A model generated the notes under the pieces. It made no database searches. It saw only the letters and a program-made list of their open reading frames with translations, and had not been told where the DNA came from. DNA of 64,000 bases, taken from assembly GCF_006345805.1 (NCBI RefSeq), contig NC_043010.1:17112001-17176000 (forward strand). Direction: 5' to 3'. Positions 15,077-63,197 of the stretch are shown here, one piece after another. The DNA is from Octopus sinensis (taxonomy: Eukaryota). A program made the translations under genes and the position numbers. The first letter of the stretch is position 1. Every line of letters begins with the position of its first letter.

Positions 15077-15539
15077 TATATATATATATATATATATAGA
15101 TATATATATATAATATATATATATTTGTAAAAAATGAAGTTGAAAATGCTGCTATATTAGACAAATTTTAATTTAACATGTTTCGGTTCTTGAAATGACG
15201 AACCTTATCAAAAAATTTTTTTTATATATAATAAAGAGAGTCCATGCTATATGTTTAAAGAGTATGATGTAATAGTTCATAATTGTGACATACATTCAAT
15301 AGAGTCAAATATAAAAAATTCATATACAATAAAGAGAGTCCATGCTATATGTTTAAAGAGTATGATGTAATAGTTCATAATTGTGACATACATTCAATAG
15401 AGTCAAATATAAAAAATTCATGTTCTTGAAAAGGCGAGGAGTTCATTATGGATTTTACCTTGTGTTCCAATGGGAGCAACAGTAATGATTTTTGGTAGGT
15501 GTCTGCTGGCATAATTTTGCCAGCAGACACCTACCAGGC

Positions 15540-38869: not shown

Positions 38870-39232
38870 TCTCTATATATATAAACGGCAAAATGTCTGC
38901 GTGCGTGTCCTTTATACAAATCCACAATTTTTCAGTTAGAGGGCTCGCACTTTCTATGGTCATTTAAAACCGTCCAAGGGTGGTCATACACATCTTTACA
39001 TTTCCCCAGTCACTCCGCAAAGCCATTAAAAAATCAATAGAAGTGATTTTTGGTGAATTTTCTATCCAAAACCCAATCAAAATGCCCGAAACTTGATTCG
39101 CCAATTGAATGCCAGCTAGCTGTATGTGATTGGTCGGAGATTTGGACAGTACTTACATGTATGTGTGCACGCACGCAGCTGTATATGCATGCGCTAGCAC
39201 TATGACCCGGCGTTGCCGGGTCATAATGCTAG
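38870..39232 (+). mobile_element. Non-autonomous Helitron, complete (363 bp)
   Basis: A|TCTCTATATATATAAACGGC start; hairpin ATGACCCGGCGTTGCCGGGTCAT then AATGCTAG|T. Confidence 0.92.
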
Positions 39233-39244
39233 TATAGAATATAG

Positions 39245-39830
39245 AACGGTATTAAGAGCGTTTGAAGATATCTATGTGTCGATGTGGAAAGCTTGTACGA
39301 GATGGGACTAATTGATGGAGAGAGGATTTGCAAAATACTCAGCTTCCACGCTGGCGGCATCGGTGTAGGGAGGGAAGAGGAGTTCAGGATGCTGAACTCC
39401 TTAAAGACAACGACTAGGGAGAGGAGTGGAGTGAGATAAACATCCTCAACACAGGAAGGGATGTGGTCGAAGAGATTCTCGTGATTTCAGGAGTTAAAAG
39501 ATCGGAAGAGGAAGCAGATGGTTTAGAAGAATTGGTGGCGAGAGACTTGTTGCTGATATCCAGGTTAGTAACATCAAAAAATGGAGTTTCCCCATTCTCG
39601 CAGTCACTCATCTCTCTCAATTGAGCCAATCGTCTCTGTCGTGAACATAGATACCACCTTTCAGGATCAAGATACAATGGATAGTGAAGCGTGGACAGCT
39701 GAGAGGAGTTGAATACTGGCTTTGAGAAATCGCTATCTCGAAGACAAAGAGGATGTGACACTCGTAGAATGGAACAACGCCCATAGCAGAGAAGGGAAAA
39801 GTGTTCAGAGGATTTTTTTAATGCATTTCT
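39245..39830 (-). mobile_element. Decayed LINE apurinic endonuclease (APE) region
   Basis: Frameshifted pieces (LKGGIYVH; GVQHPELL...LSHLVQ) resemble the KGGVxVYV and GDFNxHH...LxQLV motifs of CR1/Jockey APE. Confidence 0.5.
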
Positions 39831-55220: not shown

Positions 55221-55427
55221 AATCCATCATTTCAATGATGCTGGAGGCAACAACACCGCCATTAAGGGACAGACATGAAATAAATAGTTGTTTTTATATT
55301 TTAAATTTTAGTTCACAAAAATCCAAGGCCGGCTCCTTGCAGCCATCACCACCACCTCCTCTGTTATATAACAACCTACCAATATTATCACAGCTCTCAG
55401 TGTGTGTGTGTGTGTGTGTGTGTGTTT

Positions 55428-55475
<48 letters not shown>

Positions 55476-55546
55476 TGTGTGTGTTTGTGGTGTGTGTGTG
55501 TTTGTGTGTTTGTGTGTGTGTGTGTGTGTGTTTGTGTGTGGTGTGT

Positions 55547-55577
<31 letters not shown>

Positions 55578-55590
55578 TTGTGTGTGTTGT

Positions 55591-55627
<37 letters not shown>

Positions 55628-55659
55628 GTGTGTGTGTGTGTTTGTGTGTTGTGTGTGTG

Positions 55660-55710
<51 letters not shown>

Positions 55711-56051
55711 TTGTGTGTGTGGTAAAGAAGCTTGCTTTGCAATGCAGTGGTCTTGGGTTCTGTTTCAGTGCACAGCACATTGTGCAGGTATCTTCCACTA
55801 TAGCCCTGGGCTAAACAAAGACTCCTGAGTGGATTTGTTGGATCGAACTGAAATGTGTGTGTGTGTGTGTTTCTCAAATCTCCGAGTATGTTTATGTGTT
55901 GGTGATCAACCATGGCTTCCCTAATGAAGTCATTTACTTGCAGTCCACCATGAAAATATATCCCTGTTTTGTTCTTTATCATGTGTCCGTGTGTCACAGA
56001 ATCATCTTTGTATATAAAGGAATAACACTTATTTCTTTGTAACACAACTTC

Positions 56052-56095
<44 letters not shown>

Positions 56096-57907
56096 CACGT
56101 ACATATATAGGCAATATCAAATATATCTAAATACAACAATGATGATGATGATACGTATATACATACATATACACATCATCATCATCATCATCAGAAATCG
56201 GACGCTAAATGATGATGATGATAATGATGTGTATATATATGTATGTATATACGTATCATCATTATCATTGTTGTATTTAGGGTTAAGGTTAGGGATATAT
56301 ATATAAATATGATGATGATGATATATACATGGTGGACTCTCCCGTCAAGGACGAAATATGAGCATTTAGCTTTTGCCGAACGACCTGCACAAATTATTTG
56401 TTTATAAGAGATCAAAATGTTTGTGCCACACATTAGCTTACTCTCACAATCAAATCAACAGTACCTGAATAGGTGTCACAGTGTGCCATGCATCAGGTGC
56501 CAAAGTGACTGCAGAGCAACATGAAATAAAGTGTTTTGCTCAAGAACACAACACACCGCCCGGTCTAGGAATTGAACCCATGATCAGTTGACTGCGAGTG
56601 CAATAGCCTAACCACTAGGTCACGCACTCTCACTGATATATCTATATATCATAGTCGTCATCATTGTTTAACGTCCGCTTTCCATGCTGGCATGGGTTGG
56701 ACTGTTTGACTGAGGTCTGGAAAGCCAGGACGCTGCACCAAGCTTCAGCCCTTCCTAACGCCAACCACTCCAAGAATGTAGTAGGTGCTTTATACATACC
56801 ACCGGCACAGGAGCCAGTCAGAGGGCACTGGCATCGGCCACGTTTGGATGGTGCTTTTTACGTGCCACCAGCACAGGAGCCAGTCAGGGGGCACTGGCAT
56901 CGGCCACATTCAGATGGTGCCACATATATATGTGTGTTTGCATCATCATCATCATTGCATGTAAATATATTTGACATTGTCTATATATGTACGCGTTTTG
57001 TGAGTGTGTGGGGGTGTTTCTGAAAATTGTGTTACAGCTGAAAAAAAAAAGTCCAAAAGGTCAACCAAATCATGGAACCAAACTGTAGCAGCAACAGCAG
57101 GGTTCAGTTGGAATCCCATAAAACCCAAACGTAAACCGACAAGGATCTACAGGAAATTTGCAGGGACCGGTTGAAAAATTACAGGACCAGCTACATATCT
57201 GAAGGGATCAAATGAGTGCTGGCAGATAGGGGCAAACTGAAATTTTGTAGGGACCAGCTGGAAGCTTGAGGAGAGTAGCTGAAAGATTGCAGGAATCAGA
57301 CGAAATCTTTAATTCTGTAAAACAGCCAGAAATTATTGCTTTTCTGTGTTAAGTGAAACATTTTGTGAGACCTGAAACCAAAATAAACATTTAAAATAAA
57401 ATAAAAATGTGTAAATAGATCAGCTATTTTAATGTTATATCCCCACCCTCGTTCCATCTCCAAGATAAATGTGGAATCAATAATAATGAGAAAATAAGGG
57501 TCGATACATCCTGGCTCCTGAGTGGTAGTGGTCGGTGGGTAAAGGAAAGGCATGTCCTAATGGAAGCTGAGGGAGAGACAATGAAGAAACAGCAATTGTT
57601 GCCCAAGAGCAAGATTGGTGCCGCTTATTGGACACGTTTTGGATCAAACATAAGAGTTGAGGGAATGTTACAGTTGTGTTGATATGCTTCTTCAGTCTAA
57701 ATATAATTTAAATCCTTCATTTGGTTTTTGTGTTTTGGTTCTATTTCGACGGAACATTCTGGCTTTTTTTTCCACCATTCTTTGTTTCCTGTCCTTGTTC
57801 GTTTGTTCTGTACACAGAATCATTGCTCGTTAATTTTCATGTTCGGACGGCACCACTGCAGCCCTCGCCCCTTCTCCAGCTGGCACCAGAGAAGGGGCAT
57901 GCACGTG

Positions 57908-58024
57908 TCAGCGCAACGTCTGCGACATATGAAGTGCATTCAGCATTAACTTGAATGTGGCACCAGTCAGGTTGGCTCCGCGCAGGTTTGCATCCTGCAA
58001 ATCGGAGCCTGAAAGGTCACAGTT
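57908..58024 (-). CDS. KCTD9: KCTD9 last coding exon (pentapeptide repeats)
   Basis: TTTTCAG| acceptor; NCDLSGSDLQDANLRGANLTGATFKLMLNALHMSQTLR*, matching the KCTD9 C-terminus NCDLSGCDLQEANLRG...LHMSQSVR as I recall it. Confidence 0.93.
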   Translation of the reverse strand, partial: NCDLSGSDLQDANLRGANLTGATFKLMLNALHMSQTLR

Positions 58025-58404
58025 CTGAAAAGAGAAAATGAAATTTTTGTTATTTACACTTTATATATTTTTTACATAATTATTTTTTTGAATGTTTGAA
58101 CATAAGTCAAACTTTTTAAATGCCTGCACATCGATTAAAGTTTAGAGGAGGGTAATTAGAGAGGTGTGTGTGAAGTGAGATCACAGAGTGGAGGTGGGAC
58201 TGACCATGTGGTTCATCAATTCTTCGCTTATAATTTAAGGGCAAAAAATGTCTTTGAACAGAATATTTAATTGGGGAGAAGAACATCTGGAATTGTGACC
58301 TGAAATTTGGTCCCCTATTTGTAGGAAGATGTTTCTCTGGTTTGTTCAGAACCATGAAACAAAAGTAACTCAACTTCTCTTAAGAGTTTCTAATGAGGAA
58401 ACAC

Positions 58405-58411
58405 ATGCACG

Positions 58412-58482
<71 letters not shown>

Positions 58483-58850
58483 ACACTCTCACATACACAC
58501 ACACATACTTTTACACACACACACTTACACTCACATACACACACACATTTACACACACAGACACTCACACATACACACACATTTACACACAAACTCACAA
58601 TTTACACACACACACACACACTTACACTCTCACACACACACATTTACACTCACACACACACATTTACACACACACACAATTTACACACACAGACACTCAC
58701 CCCTCCACACACACACACTCTCTTACACTCTCACTCATCCCCCCTAACACACACACATACACACACTCACACACACACATACACACACTCACATACACAC
58801 ACACATACACACTCACACACACACACAGACACTCACACACACACACACCC
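58405..58850. repeat. Degenerate (CA)n array in the last KCTD9 intron
   Basis: Direct reading. Confidence 0.95.
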
Positions 58851-58977
58851 TGATATCCAATCTTGCAATGCAGAGTAGATTGTTAAATATAAAACCACCA
58901 TCACCCAGTTTCACCCAAGTGAGGGGGTGGATAAGTGAGCAAAAGAACTGGCTTTTGGCAAACTGATTCTGCTTTAC

Positions 58978-59111
58978 CTCAAGATCAGCACCAGCCAGCA
59001 CAGCACCCCGTAGGTCACAGTTCTTTAAATTTGCATTCTTCAATGTTGCCACCCGTAAATTGACGCTGGCCATATGGCTGCCTTCCAAGATGACATTCTT
59101 CATCTGGGCAC
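58978..59111 (-). CDS. KCTD9: KCTD9 penultimate coding exon
   Basis: TTTGCAG| ... |GTAAAG; 134 nt, phase 1-0; (G)AQMKNVILEGSHMASVNLRVATLKNANLKNCDLRGAVLAGADLE. Confidence 0.93.
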
Positions 59112-60408
59112 CTGCAAACAGAAGGAAAAAGGAACCAGAATCGGTAAACAAAATGGAAACTAACAAAAAAATGAAAAGACGTGGATCGAATGTTGGCATT
59201 TTACACATCCACAGCCATGATAACCATGGAAACACTGGAGTTTCACCAGAGCCACATAAGTGTATCCAGGGGCTGAAAACTGTGCTGAAGCATCACTTCA
59301 ATGGGGTCAAATCTCTCTTTGATTATTGCTGGTTTGGGGCTAAATTGCACACACACAACGGGTTTCTTCCAGTTTCAGTTTACCAAATCCAGTCCAGTCT
59401 CAAGTCTTTGATCAGACGAAAACCAGAGTAGAAAACATTTACCCAAGGTGCCACACAGTGGGACTGAACCTGAAACCACAAGGCTGGGAAGCAAACTTCT
59501 TATCACACAGCCATGCCTGCACCTGTGTGTGTGTGTGCGCAGAGCACGAGGGGCTAATGATATCAATCATCGAAAAGGCGGCGAGCTGGCAGAAACGTTA
59601 GCACGCCGGGCGAAATGCGTAACCGTATTTCGTCTGCCGTTATGTTCTGAGTTCAAATTCCGCCGAGGTCGACTTTGCCTTTCATCCTTTCGGGGTCAAT
59701 AAATTAAGTACCAGTTACACACTGGGGTTGACATAATCGACTTAATCTGTCTGTCTGTCCTTGTTTGTCTCCTCTGTGTTTATCCCCATGTGGGTAGTAA
59801 AGAAATAGAAATAGCAGCATACGCAATTTGGTGATAAACATTGAGGAAGAGTTGATTCAGAAAAACAAGACACCTGTGCGAGTGGCACGTAAAAAGCACC
59901 ATTCGAGCGTAGCCACCTGACCAGTGCTACCTGACTGACACCCATGCTGGTGGCACATAAGAAGCACCATTTGAGTGAGACCGAAGCATGATCATTGCCA
60001 GTGCTACCTGATTGGGTCCCATGCTAGTAGCAAGTAAAAGGCACCCACTATACTCTCGAAGTGGTTGGCTTTAGGAAGGGCATCCATCTGTAGAAACCTT
60101 GCCAAATCAGATTGGAGCCTGGTGCAGCTTTTTCCTGGCCTGCCAGTCCTCAGTCGAACTGTCCCACCCATGCCAGCATGGAAAACGGATGTTAAACAAT
60201 GATGATGATGATGATGATAATGATGATGACACCGCAGTCTCGTCTTCAACATTAAAGATAGCAACAAGAGGGTGTGTACATAGAAAGTGACAGGAAATGA
60301 TAGCTTGTGAAACAAAATGTCAGTAGATTTAAAACTGATTTATACAATGTTCCCAGTGTCATGAATTGAGGCATTTCATTTATTGATGGAACAAAATATT
60401 CTTTTCTA

Positions 60409-60857
60409 CTCTAGGCACAAGGCCCGAAATTTTGGAGGAGGTGGGGTATTCGATTAGATCAACCCCAGTATGCAACTGGTACTTAATTCATTGGCGAGCT
60501 GGCAGAAACGTTAGCACGCCGGGCGAAATGCGTAGCCGTATTTCGTCTGTCCTTACGTTGTGAGTTCAAATTCCGCCGAGGTCGACTTTGCCTTTCATCC
60601 TTTCAGGGTCGATAAATTAAGTACCAGTTACGCACTGGAGTCGATGTAATCGACTTAATACCTATGTCTGTCCTTGTTTATCCCCTCTATGTTTAGCCCC
60701 TTGTGGGTAGTAAAGAAATAGGTACTTAATTTATCGACCCCGAAAAGATGAAAGGCAAAGTCAACCTCAGTGGAATTCGAACTCAGAACATAAAGACAGA
60801 CGAAATGCCGTTAAGCATTTTGCCCAGCGTGCTAACGTTTCAGCCAGTTTGCCGCCT
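60409..60857. mobile_element. SINE-B (+, 60489-60720) inserted into SINE-B (-)
   Basis: TSD GGTACTTAATT at 60478-60488 and 60721-60731. Confidence 0.85.
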
Positions 60858-61797: not shown

Positions 61798-63057
61798 GGG
61801 GTCATCCCATAAATAATGCAGTTTTTTTAACTGCATGAACAAAAAGTTGGAGGAGGACGGGATAAACTACCTGCATCAACTTGCAATAATAGCAGGTAGT
61901 AATATTACCTTGTGCTTATTCATGGTGCAAGTTTTGAAGAGTGCAGTTTGATTTTAACAATTATTTTTTCAAAGCTATAATGGAAGTGACGAAGGAACAT
62001 ATTCGCCATATTTTCCTTTATGAATTCAATAAAGGCAACAGTGAAACGGAAAGTGCGAGGAATATTAATGCAGTAGATGGGGATTGAACAATAAGTGTAA
62101 GCCAGAGTCAACGGTAGTTCCAGAAATTCTAAACCAGAAACAACAGCCTAGAAGATGAGCTTGGAAGATCTGTAGAGCTTGACAAGGATGTCCTGCAAAC
62201 CCTGGTGGAACAAAATTTCATCAGAACTGTTGAGGAACTAGCAGAGAAGCTTCCATTTGGTCATTCAACCATTCATCAACACCTGCATGCTATCAGAAAA
62301 GCCAGCAAATTGGATCGATGGGTTCCTTGCAAACTTTCTGAATCTAATCATGTGTAGAAAGTGAATATGTGCTCTTTGCTGTCACGTCTCACGAATGAAC
62401 ATTTCTTTGACCGAATAGTGACTGGTGACGAAAAATAGGTTCTCTATAAAAATGTCAAGCACTAAAGACAGTGGGTAGGGAAAGGAGAAATACTGGCATC
62501 CCAGGCTAAAGGTCTTTACCCATGTAAAGTGTTGTTATCTGTTTGGTGGGATATGAAAGGTTCAGTCCACTTTGAACTTTTAAACCCAAACCAAATGATA
62601 ACAAAGGAGATCTACTGCAAGCAGCTTGAGTGGCACTAGAAAAAAAAAATGACCATCTTTCGTTTCAAGACAAAAGGTGTTCTTCCATCAGGATAATGCT
62701 TGGCCACTTACAGCAAAGATGACATTCCAAAGGCTGGAGCAGTTTGAATGGGAAATGATGCCCCACCCACCATATTCGCCAGACATTGCCCCATATGATT
62801 ATCATTTATTCCGCAGTTTTCAAAATCATTTGAATGGAAAAAATATTAATTCTGTAGAGGAGGTCAGAACAGGAGTATTTTTCATCATGGACAAATGAAT
62901 TTTGGAAGAGGAGCCTTGCAAGTCTACCAGATAGATGGAAGAGCATTGTAGAAAATGAAGGGGAGTACATTTTAGATTGAAAAAAAAACTTTCTTTATCT
63001 TAATTTTGAAAAATAAAAGAAGTATTAAAAAAACGCATTATTTATGGGATGACCCAA
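61797..63057 (+). mobile_element. Full-length decayed mariner (transposase relic about 61980-62980) in a KCTD9 intron, antisense to the gene
   Basis: TIR (T/G)GGGTCATCCCATAAATAATGC at both ends, TA at the right end. MEVTKEHIRHIFLYEFNKG, IVTGDEK, FHQDNAWP and HPPYSPDIAPYDYHLF are present with many stops. Confidence 0.93.
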
Positions 63058-63091: not shown

Positions 63092-63197
63092 CTTCCATAT
63101 TAGCTTGGTGACCAGCAGGGTCTTCAAAGTTGCAACTACACAAGCTGGAACCTTCCAGATTGGCACAAACCATTTTGATTCCTTGTAAGTTGGCACA
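63092..63197 (-). CDS. KCTD9: KCTD9 third-to-last coding exon (upstream exons lie beyond the window)
   Basis: TTCTTGTAG| ... |GTAAGG; 106 nt, phase 0-1; CANLQGIKMVCANLEGSSLCSCNFEDPAGHQANME(G), matching KCTD9 CANLQGVKM...CNFEDP.G..AN.EG. Confidence 0.93.

Follow-up and report, generated by a model that had tools for sequence, protein, structure and literature searches.

A candidate programmed readthrough site with a downstream hairpin at the KCTD9 stop codon of coleoid cephalopods

Does translation of KCTD9 in Octopus sinensis always end at the annotated UGA codon, or is this codon read through by some of the ribosomes? The question arises from a 64,000-nucleotide (nt) stretch of the O. sinensis genome (contig NC_043010.1, positions 17,112,001 to 17,176,000 of assembly GCF_006345805.1; hereafter the window, in whose own numbering positions are given), which carries the last three coding exons of this gene on its minus strand. 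KCTD9, a conserved Cullin-3 substrate adaptor, is annotated in O. sinensis as a protein of 409 amino acids with a C-terminus common to the molluscan orthologues. Beyond its stop codon lie a hairpin and an open frame, and comparison with other molluscs leads us to read the arrangement, with a probability of about 0.6, as a programmed stop-codon readthrough site common to all the coleoids sampled, that is, octopuses, an argonaut and cuttlefish-like decapodiforms. The features of the locus are the following.

63092..63197, minus strand: antepenultimate coding exon of KCTD9 (CANLQG...HQANMEG, ending in phase 1), with splice sites ag/TGT and G/gtaagg.
58978..59111, minus strand: penultimate coding exon (pentapeptide repeats, ...AQMKN...GADLE), with splice sites cag/GT and GAG/gtaaag and a protein match.
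57911..58024, minus strand: last coding exon, ending in ...NALHMSQTLR (the annotated C-terminus), with a match to the Pfam family Pentapeptide (E = 5e-8).
57907..57910, minus strand: UGA stop codon (57910-57908) and the next base, C (57907), together UGA-C; the same in seven coleoid sequences.
57899..57907, minus strand: 9-nt spacer CACGTGCAT (= CACGUGCAU) between stop and stem, without any indel in the coleoids.
57886..57898, minus strand: 5' arm of the hairpin (GCCCCUUCUC + UGG), with the perfect core GCCCCTTCTC at 57898-57889.
57880..57885, minus strand: hairpin loop UGCCAG, in which RNAfold closes one further U.G pair to leave a 4-nt loop.
57867..57879, minus strand: 3' arm of the hairpin (CUG + GAGAAGGGGC), with the perfect core GAGAAGGGGC at 57876-57867.
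57833..57907, minus strand: in-frame extension of 25 codons, peptide HVHAPSLVPAGEGARAAVVPSEHEN, with coding-type substitutions in this frame only and in-frame indels.
57830..57832, minus strand: second in-frame stop, UAA, closing the extension and aligned with a TAA in Argonauta and a TGA in the decapodiforms.

The peptide of the antepenultimate exon is 100% identical to O. sinensis KCTD9 (XP_029645211.1), and the DNA agrees with CM016872.1 of GCA_006345805.1 at 100% over 8593 nt. The stop is preceded by a CGC codon, giving CGC-UGA-C, and the two stem cores, GCCCCTTCTC and GAGAAGGGGC, are fully complementary over 10 base pairs (bp); U.G, G.U and G-C pairs lengthen the stem to 13-15 bp with wobbles. 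The extension has a G+C content of 61% vs 40% in both the following 300 and the following 1000 nt. A preliminary description of this DNA had reported the UGA-C, the 9-nt spacer, the stem and the open 25-codon frame, as well as a GC-rich extension set against an AT-rich untranslated region (UTR); all of the former lie at the minus-strand coordinates that it gave, and the base composition bears out the latter.

Whether the single sequence could be due to chance was considered before its relatives. Using RNAfold, a 59-nt segment was found to fold with -36.1 kcal/mol vs -22.3 +/- 2.8 kcal/mol for shuffled sequences (z = -4.9), and none of 200 shuffles was as good. About four perfect, non-repetitive hairpins of at least 10 bp occur in the window where 1.25 are expected, and a hairpin of this kind somewhere within it is in itself unremarkable. 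In Octopus the G+C-rich sequence past the stop is open for 22-28 codons in every frame, +1 and +2 included, and the open frame was therefore rejected as standalone evidence. The single Octopus sequence is barely above chance, and the case is therefore decided by comparison among species; to judge from the alignments, conservation in the other coleoids is what raises the feature above it.

Seven coleoid sequences were compared, namely those of O. sinensis, Octopus vulgaris (L027), Octopus bimaculoides (L018), Argonauta hians (L004), Sepia (Acanthosepion) pharaonis (L003) and two decapodiforms from Logan. The first of the latter is represented by ten retrieved RNA-seq contigs (L005-L014) and the second, more divergent one by L001 and L002, so that 12 decapodiform RNA-seq contigs were retrieved and read, of about 36 in the index. 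Coleoid KCTD9 proteins were found with an X-padded C-terminal query and then among the cluster members, and a protein tree placed the Logan samples as decapodiform, bivalve-like or caenogastropod-like. The outgroups consisted of two pteriomorph-bivalve-like sequences (L015-17, L021-22), one caenogastropod-like sequence (L019-20) and the chiton Liolophura (L026). The comparison covers both coleoid superorders, which according to the literature split about 250-300 million years ago, in about four independent lineages. A search for short C-terminal fragments of further cephalopods gave no match above 84% identity. A scan of Joint Genome Institute (JGI) metagenome contigs with a 20-nt pattern yielded L023 and L024, a pair of identical contigs that are unrelated and were discarded as chance matches.

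CGC-TGA-C is present in all seven coleoid sequences. Eight of the nine spacer bases are invariant across the coleoids, the exception being one A/G difference, and the invariant bases include two third-codon positions, which suggests constraint at the nucleotide level. In the preceding exon synonymous sites changed freely, with 41 third-position changes in 38 codons. In the bivalve-like and gastropod-like outgroups KCTD9 ends in TAA-T or TGA-A, the frame meets another stop within 0-9 codons, and the hairpin is missing. The alignment across cephalopods and other molluscs that the preliminary description had called for thus finds the TGA-C, the spacer and the stem in 7/7 coleoids and an arrangement confined to them with respect to these outgroups. 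The best reading of the distribution is that the site would have arisen in the coleoids or earlier in the cephalopods, the comparison being one without Nautilus.

As a separate observation, KCTD9 of the chiton Liolophura sinensis (L026:10569-10720) also ends in TGA-C, with a frame that is open for more than 50 codons. This frame does not resemble the coleoid extension and lacks a G+C-rich hairpin, and as one sequence it is indistinguishable from chance.

The hairpin folds in every coleoid, with -22 to -36 kcal/mol per 59-62 nt and z-scores of -2.1 to -4.9, and is absent in the outgroups. A G+C-rich stem core of 8-11 bp stands at the same distance from the stop in all the coleoids, the decapodiform stem amounting to 11-12 bp, while the loop varies by lineage in sequence and by whole codons in length (+3 nt in Argonauta). 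The stem lies in codon register, such that three pairs each link two third-codon positions: one is an invariant C-G, one runs from U-A through U.G to A.A (the last in L001), and stem pair 6, which is U-A in Octopus, C.A in Argonauta and C-G in the decapodiforms, is the sole compensatory pair. Eight of the 13 stem pairs never vary. The stem is conserved across the coleoids; for covariation, which the preliminary description had asked to be examined, a formal test on four distinct sequences has no power, one pair being compensatory and 246 of 500 shuffles as good. On the present alignment, the stem is supported by conservation and not by covariation.

The C.A mismatch of Argonauta lies mid-stem (L004:16185 and 16209), between the U-A of Octopus and the C-G of the decapodiforms. 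An A opposite a C is a preferred configuration for ADAR, and it may be speculated that editing at this site would restore pairing.

The evidence for a translated product comes from the way in which the extension has changed. Its length to the aligned second stop is 25 codons in Octopus, 28 in Argonauta and 31 in the decapodiforms. For L005 vs L001, identity is 0.88 in the coding exon, 0.90 in the extension and 0.44 in the next 90 nt, and for Octopus vs Argonauta the corresponding values are 0.85, 0.70 and 0.29; sequence identity drops directly past the second stop. All indels within the extension are multiples of three. Using an unbiased nucleotide aligner on Octopus and Argonauta, gaps of 3 or 6 nt only were found in the extension, as against gaps of 1, 4, 1, 1 and 3, 5, 5, 4 nt in the UTR beyond the second stop.

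Changed codons were classed as synonymous or non-synonymous in the KCTD9 frame and in the +1 and +2 frames. The ratios were 7:2, 0:9 and 0:9 for L005 vs L001, 7:3, 0:10 and 0:10 for Sepia vs L001, and 8:10, 0:15 and 2:14 for Octopus vs L005. The synonymous bias for which the preliminary description had asked is thus found between the decapodiforms, in the KCTD9 frame alone (7:2 vs 0:9 and 0:9), and the open downstream frame is kept across the coleoids to the aligned second stop with in-frame indels only. Parsimony changes at codon positions 1, 2 and 3 number 11, 8 and 21 in the extension (excess at position 3, P = 0.0096) and 8, 0 and 41 in the preceding exon. The first 15 codons, made up of spacer and stem, supply most of the third-position excess (2, 3, 11); 3' of the stem, four of the six codons changed between L005 and L001 are synonymous. 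The predicted extension peptides are as follows.

Octopus: HVHAPSLVPAGEGARAAVVPSEHEN, beginning HVHAPSLVPAGEGAR after the stop position X.
Argonauta: HVHAPSLTPAAGEGARSAAAVPPSDHKG.
Decapodiforms: HVRAPSPTTAGEGARQSH(M/T/A)M(V/L)PPSTTTD(G/S)QN.
Sepia, start after X: HVRAPSPTTAGEGAR.

Roughly half to two-thirds of the tail consists of Pro, Ser, Thr, Ala and Gly, and it is probably disordered. The motifs H-V-[HR]-A-P-S, A-G-E-G-A-R and V-P-(P)-S appear from the alignment to be under purifying selection, and in Pfam the extension matches no family. Taken together, these are the usual hallmarks of a translated extension, with a signal that is moderate and not overwhelming.

From this comparison we infer that the UGA is decoded by ribosomal readthrough, that the hairpin stimulates the process and that the tail is functional. 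Most ribosomes would stop at the KCTD9 UGA and release the canonical protein of 409 amino acids, while some would decode the UGA by means of a near-cognate tRNA. UGA-C is a weak termination context that would favour such decoding, and the stable, G+C-rich hairpin, beginning 9 nt downstream, would be positioned at the mRNA entrance of the ribosome while the UGA occupies the A site. Ribosomes that read through would go on to the conserved second stop, adding 25 codons in Octopus, 28 in Argonauta and 31 in the decapodiforms, and the product would be a KCTD9 isoform whose short tail, probably disordered, may play a regulatory part in this Cullin-3 adaptor. The readthrough signal and the extended isoform proposed in the preliminary description are in this way supported by comparative evidence, translation itself being deduced from it.

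Several points weigh against readthrough. The comparison rests on about four independent lineages, and the statistics are accordingly modest (P about 0.01). The codon-position bias is weak 3' of the hairpin (9, 5, 10). Covariation in the stem involves one pair in four distinct rows, where 246 of 500 shuffles equal the observed value, and lineage L001 has an A.A mismatch in the stem. Conservation of the stem could partly follow from conservation of the peptide, or vice versa. An X-padded query containing W followed by the decapodiform tail, run against a collection of 5.8 billion proteins, returned canonical KCTD9s only, matching 28 C-terminal residues; the absence of an extended protein from the collection is expected for readthrough and gives it no positive support. 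Finally, coleoid mRNAs are edited on a massive scale, and their editing sites typically have conserved hairpins.

Other ways of reaching or explaining the extension were weighed against these data. Alternative splicing was rejected: the decapodiform mRNA is colinear through the TGA and the extension (12 contigs), and therefore no splice removes the stop; there is also no room for an intron, and the sole plausible acceptor within the extension would lead into a frame other than that of the synonymous changes. An independent downstream open reading frame (ORF) was rejected as well, since the extension lacks an in-frame ATG at its beginning; octopods do have an ATG at 57900-57898, but in the +1 frame, and the decapodiforms lack it. 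If the extension is under coding selection, some decoding of the UGA must exist, and this could be achieved by stop-loss editing, in which ADAR would convert the A of the UGA to inosine, to be read as UGG (Trp), with the hairpin and its flanking pairings as a double-stranded editing substrate instead of an obstacle to the ribosome. All the coleoids sampled have the feature, and they form a clade with exceptional A-to-I recoding in which stop-loss editing is recognised (PMC8382921). In minimum free energy folds, moreover, the stop lies in or beside a lower helix, its A being bulged between pairs in Octopus, while in Argonauta and Sepia the UGA pairs with a UCA farther downstream. This lower helix, predicted in three of four lineages with differing partner sequences, is however short (3-5 bp), is set off by internal loops, has non-homologous partners and is missing in the L001 fold. 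The target A has a 5' G, a neighbour disfavoured by ADAR in all the metazoans examined (PMC9989829), and the coleoid stop-loss events described change UAG to UGG (PMC8382921); had selection acted for editing here, one would expect UAG. KCTD9 is not mentioned in the supplements of that paper (PMC8382921). TGA stands at this position in each of the 12 RNA-seq contigs, although their retrieval through the 409- or 416-amino-acid product guarantees a stop there; ten of the 12 have no A/G difference along an mRNA of 2-3.8 kb, a comparison in which only editing above about 50% would be visible. Among the proteins of the collection, none shows a sense codon in place of the stop. Editing also leaves the conserved C after the stop and the fixed 9-nt spacing unexplained. 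Ribosomal readthrough would account for all of these observations. We regard stop-loss editing as the strongest alternative, though an unlikely source of the extension.

The hairpin might instead belong to an untranslated, cis-acting element of the 3' UTR (a site for an RNA-binding protein or for ADAR, or a Microprocessor-type hairpin), the codon periodicity being an accident of a small sample. This would agree with the fact that the most conserved part is spacer plus stem, where the third-position excess sits, and with the weak bias after the hairpin, the three open frames of Octopus and the small number of sequences. Synonymous change is nevertheless seen in the KCTD9 frame only, and outside the hairpin too, in the 4/6 codons mentioned above; the indels are in frame, and conservation stops exactly at the aligned in-frame stop. 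Rfam gave no match, the best microRNA (miRNA) model scoring 19.9 bits (E = 2) where the gathering score is 90, and the decapodiform stem of 11-12 bp is too short for a pre-miRNA, the stem overall consisting of 11-15 bp plus irregular lower pairs. An element of this kind is accordingly judged improbable. An in-frame UGA, a close stem-loop and a conserved ORF make up the arrangement of some selenoprotein mRNAs, in which the hairpin would act in selenocysteine redefinition together with a selenocysteine insertion sequence (SECIS) in the 3' UTR; the preliminary description had proposed a scan for the latter. At E values up to 10, no SECIS family matched the 55500-58100 part of the window, which covers 2.4 kb of downstream Octopus sequence, or the transcripts L001, L005 and L006, which carry up to 1.6 kb of 3' UTR. 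Orthologues outside the coleoids terminate at the position of the UGA, some with TAA, and none has Cys there. The scan having come out negative in both Octopus and the decapodiforms, the selenocysteine reading appears largely refuted and is very improbable; together with chance it takes up a few percent.

Functional readthrough of stop codons in cellular genes is well established for insects and for a few mammalian genes, and the KCTD9 arrangement can be set beside several known systems. Where readthrough is stimulated by structure, an alphavirus example has 8-9 nt between stop and stem, a gammaretrovirus has 8 nt, and Drosophila kelch has a spacer of 8 nt that is fully conserved (PMC3159437); the 9-nt spacing of KCTD9 matches these and was therefore counted in favour of readthrough. 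Drosophila kelch and headcase share with it a cellular gene, a conserved stop, a conserved spacer of about 8 nt, a conserved stem and a downstream ORF under coding selection (PMC3159437), and kelch also has a UGA stop and a spacer conserved at the nucleotide level. The KCTD9 hairpin is compact, with a loop of 4-13 nt, unlike the long-range stems of these two genes, whose loops measure 52-268 nt; it follows UGA-C instead of UGA-A (kelch) or UAA (headcase), the extension has just 25-31 codons, and the host is a cephalopod. The type II viral signals of the alphavirus replicase and several plant virus genera likewise have UGA-C, with a stem of 11-14 bp starting after 7-9 nt, and this class was proposed by the same logic of synonymous-site and structure conservation (PMC3159437). 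KCTD9 differs from them as a chromosomal animal gene, in having CAC after the stop in place of the consensus CGG or CUA, in its compact loop and in a product that would gain a short tail and not a polymerase domain. The readthrough genes of mammals and insects (PMC4132726, PMC5100048; VDR, PMC5868278) resemble it in having been detected by a coding signature between the stops, in the preference for UGA and in the shortness of the extensions. Stop-loss editing in coleoids (Shoshan et al. 2021, PMC8382921) would also give a C-terminally extended protein, in the same clade and with a conserved local RNA structure; KCTD9 differs in a UGA whose A follows G and in a structure that lies downstream of the stop and not around it. 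In the literature searched there was no KCTD9 paper dealing with readthrough or RNA editing and no case of readthrough in a cephalopod or other mollusc. Among mammalian genes there is a further distinction. Efficient readthrough in these relies on the primary-sequence motif UGA-CUAG and not on a hairpin.

Readthrough at KCTD9 would represent a known mechanism in a new clade and a new gene, and a hidden isoform of a conserved Cullin-3 adaptor. A compact hairpin kept in both coleoid superorders would offer a tractable system for the study of structure-stimulated readthrough in animals. Annotations of coleoid genomes probably miss such extensions, since all deposited KCTD9 models end at the UGA. 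The site also raises the question of how readthrough and coleoid RNA editing interact. A bolder proposal, which we consider a long shot, is that of an ancient cephalopod innovation coupling two recoding systems, in which A-to-I editing at adenosines of the 3' arm (GAGAAG) would adjust the hairpin-stimulated readthrough of UGA-C. Were it true, editing would set the strength of the hairpin and with it the proportions of short and long KCTD9; in Argonauta, for example, it would turn the C.A of stem pair 6 into C-I. Such a site would have no described precedent either as programmed readthrough in a mollusc or as a readthrough signal under the influence of editing.

A number of other features were noted at or near the gene. 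The decapodiform 3' UTRs contain a second conserved block, TAAATTKGTCRGTCTC...TTTTGGTGCTATTTT, about 270 nt past the KCTD9 stop and amid diverged UTR (L005:~2560-2600, L001:~1500-1540, L003:~79640-79670), and could have a regulatory function. Three more perfect inverted repeats of the non-repetitive kind lie in the window at 15498-15531, 39201-39225 and 39378-39401, with 10-14 bp, short loops and a G+C content of at least 50%; they are probably parts of repeats, and they show that such hairpins are no rarity in the genome. At 55308-56300 and 58380-58880, long microsatellites of (CA)n/(TG)n and (TA)n give rise to spurious 'HTHT...' ORFs, and Rfam miRNA matches at 56130-56280, all under their gathering scores, were dismissed as artefacts of the (TA)n microsatellite.

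The introns of KCTD9 contain mobile elements. A degenerate mariner/Mos1-like transposon occupies 61938-62900 on the plus strand, its ORF fragments lying in different frames, with matches to HTH_48 (E = 1.6e-10), a domain of Mos1 transposase, and to the DDE domain Transposase_1 (E = 6e-16); the motif PHPPYSPDIAPYDYHLF is present as well. An interspersed, short interspersed nuclear element (SINE)-like repeat of about 230 nt is found at least twice in these introns, at ~59574-59813 and ~60493-60720, and also upstream at L025:14750-14989, the copies being 91-93% identical; ORF fragments related to it (…RRANVSASSP…) recur on both strands. In a KCTD9 intron outside the window, an intronless ORF of 281 amino acids, DHHC palmitoyltransferase-like and on the same strand as the gene, is present at L025:16444-17289 in O. 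sinensis and at L018:5286-6131 in O. bimaculoides.

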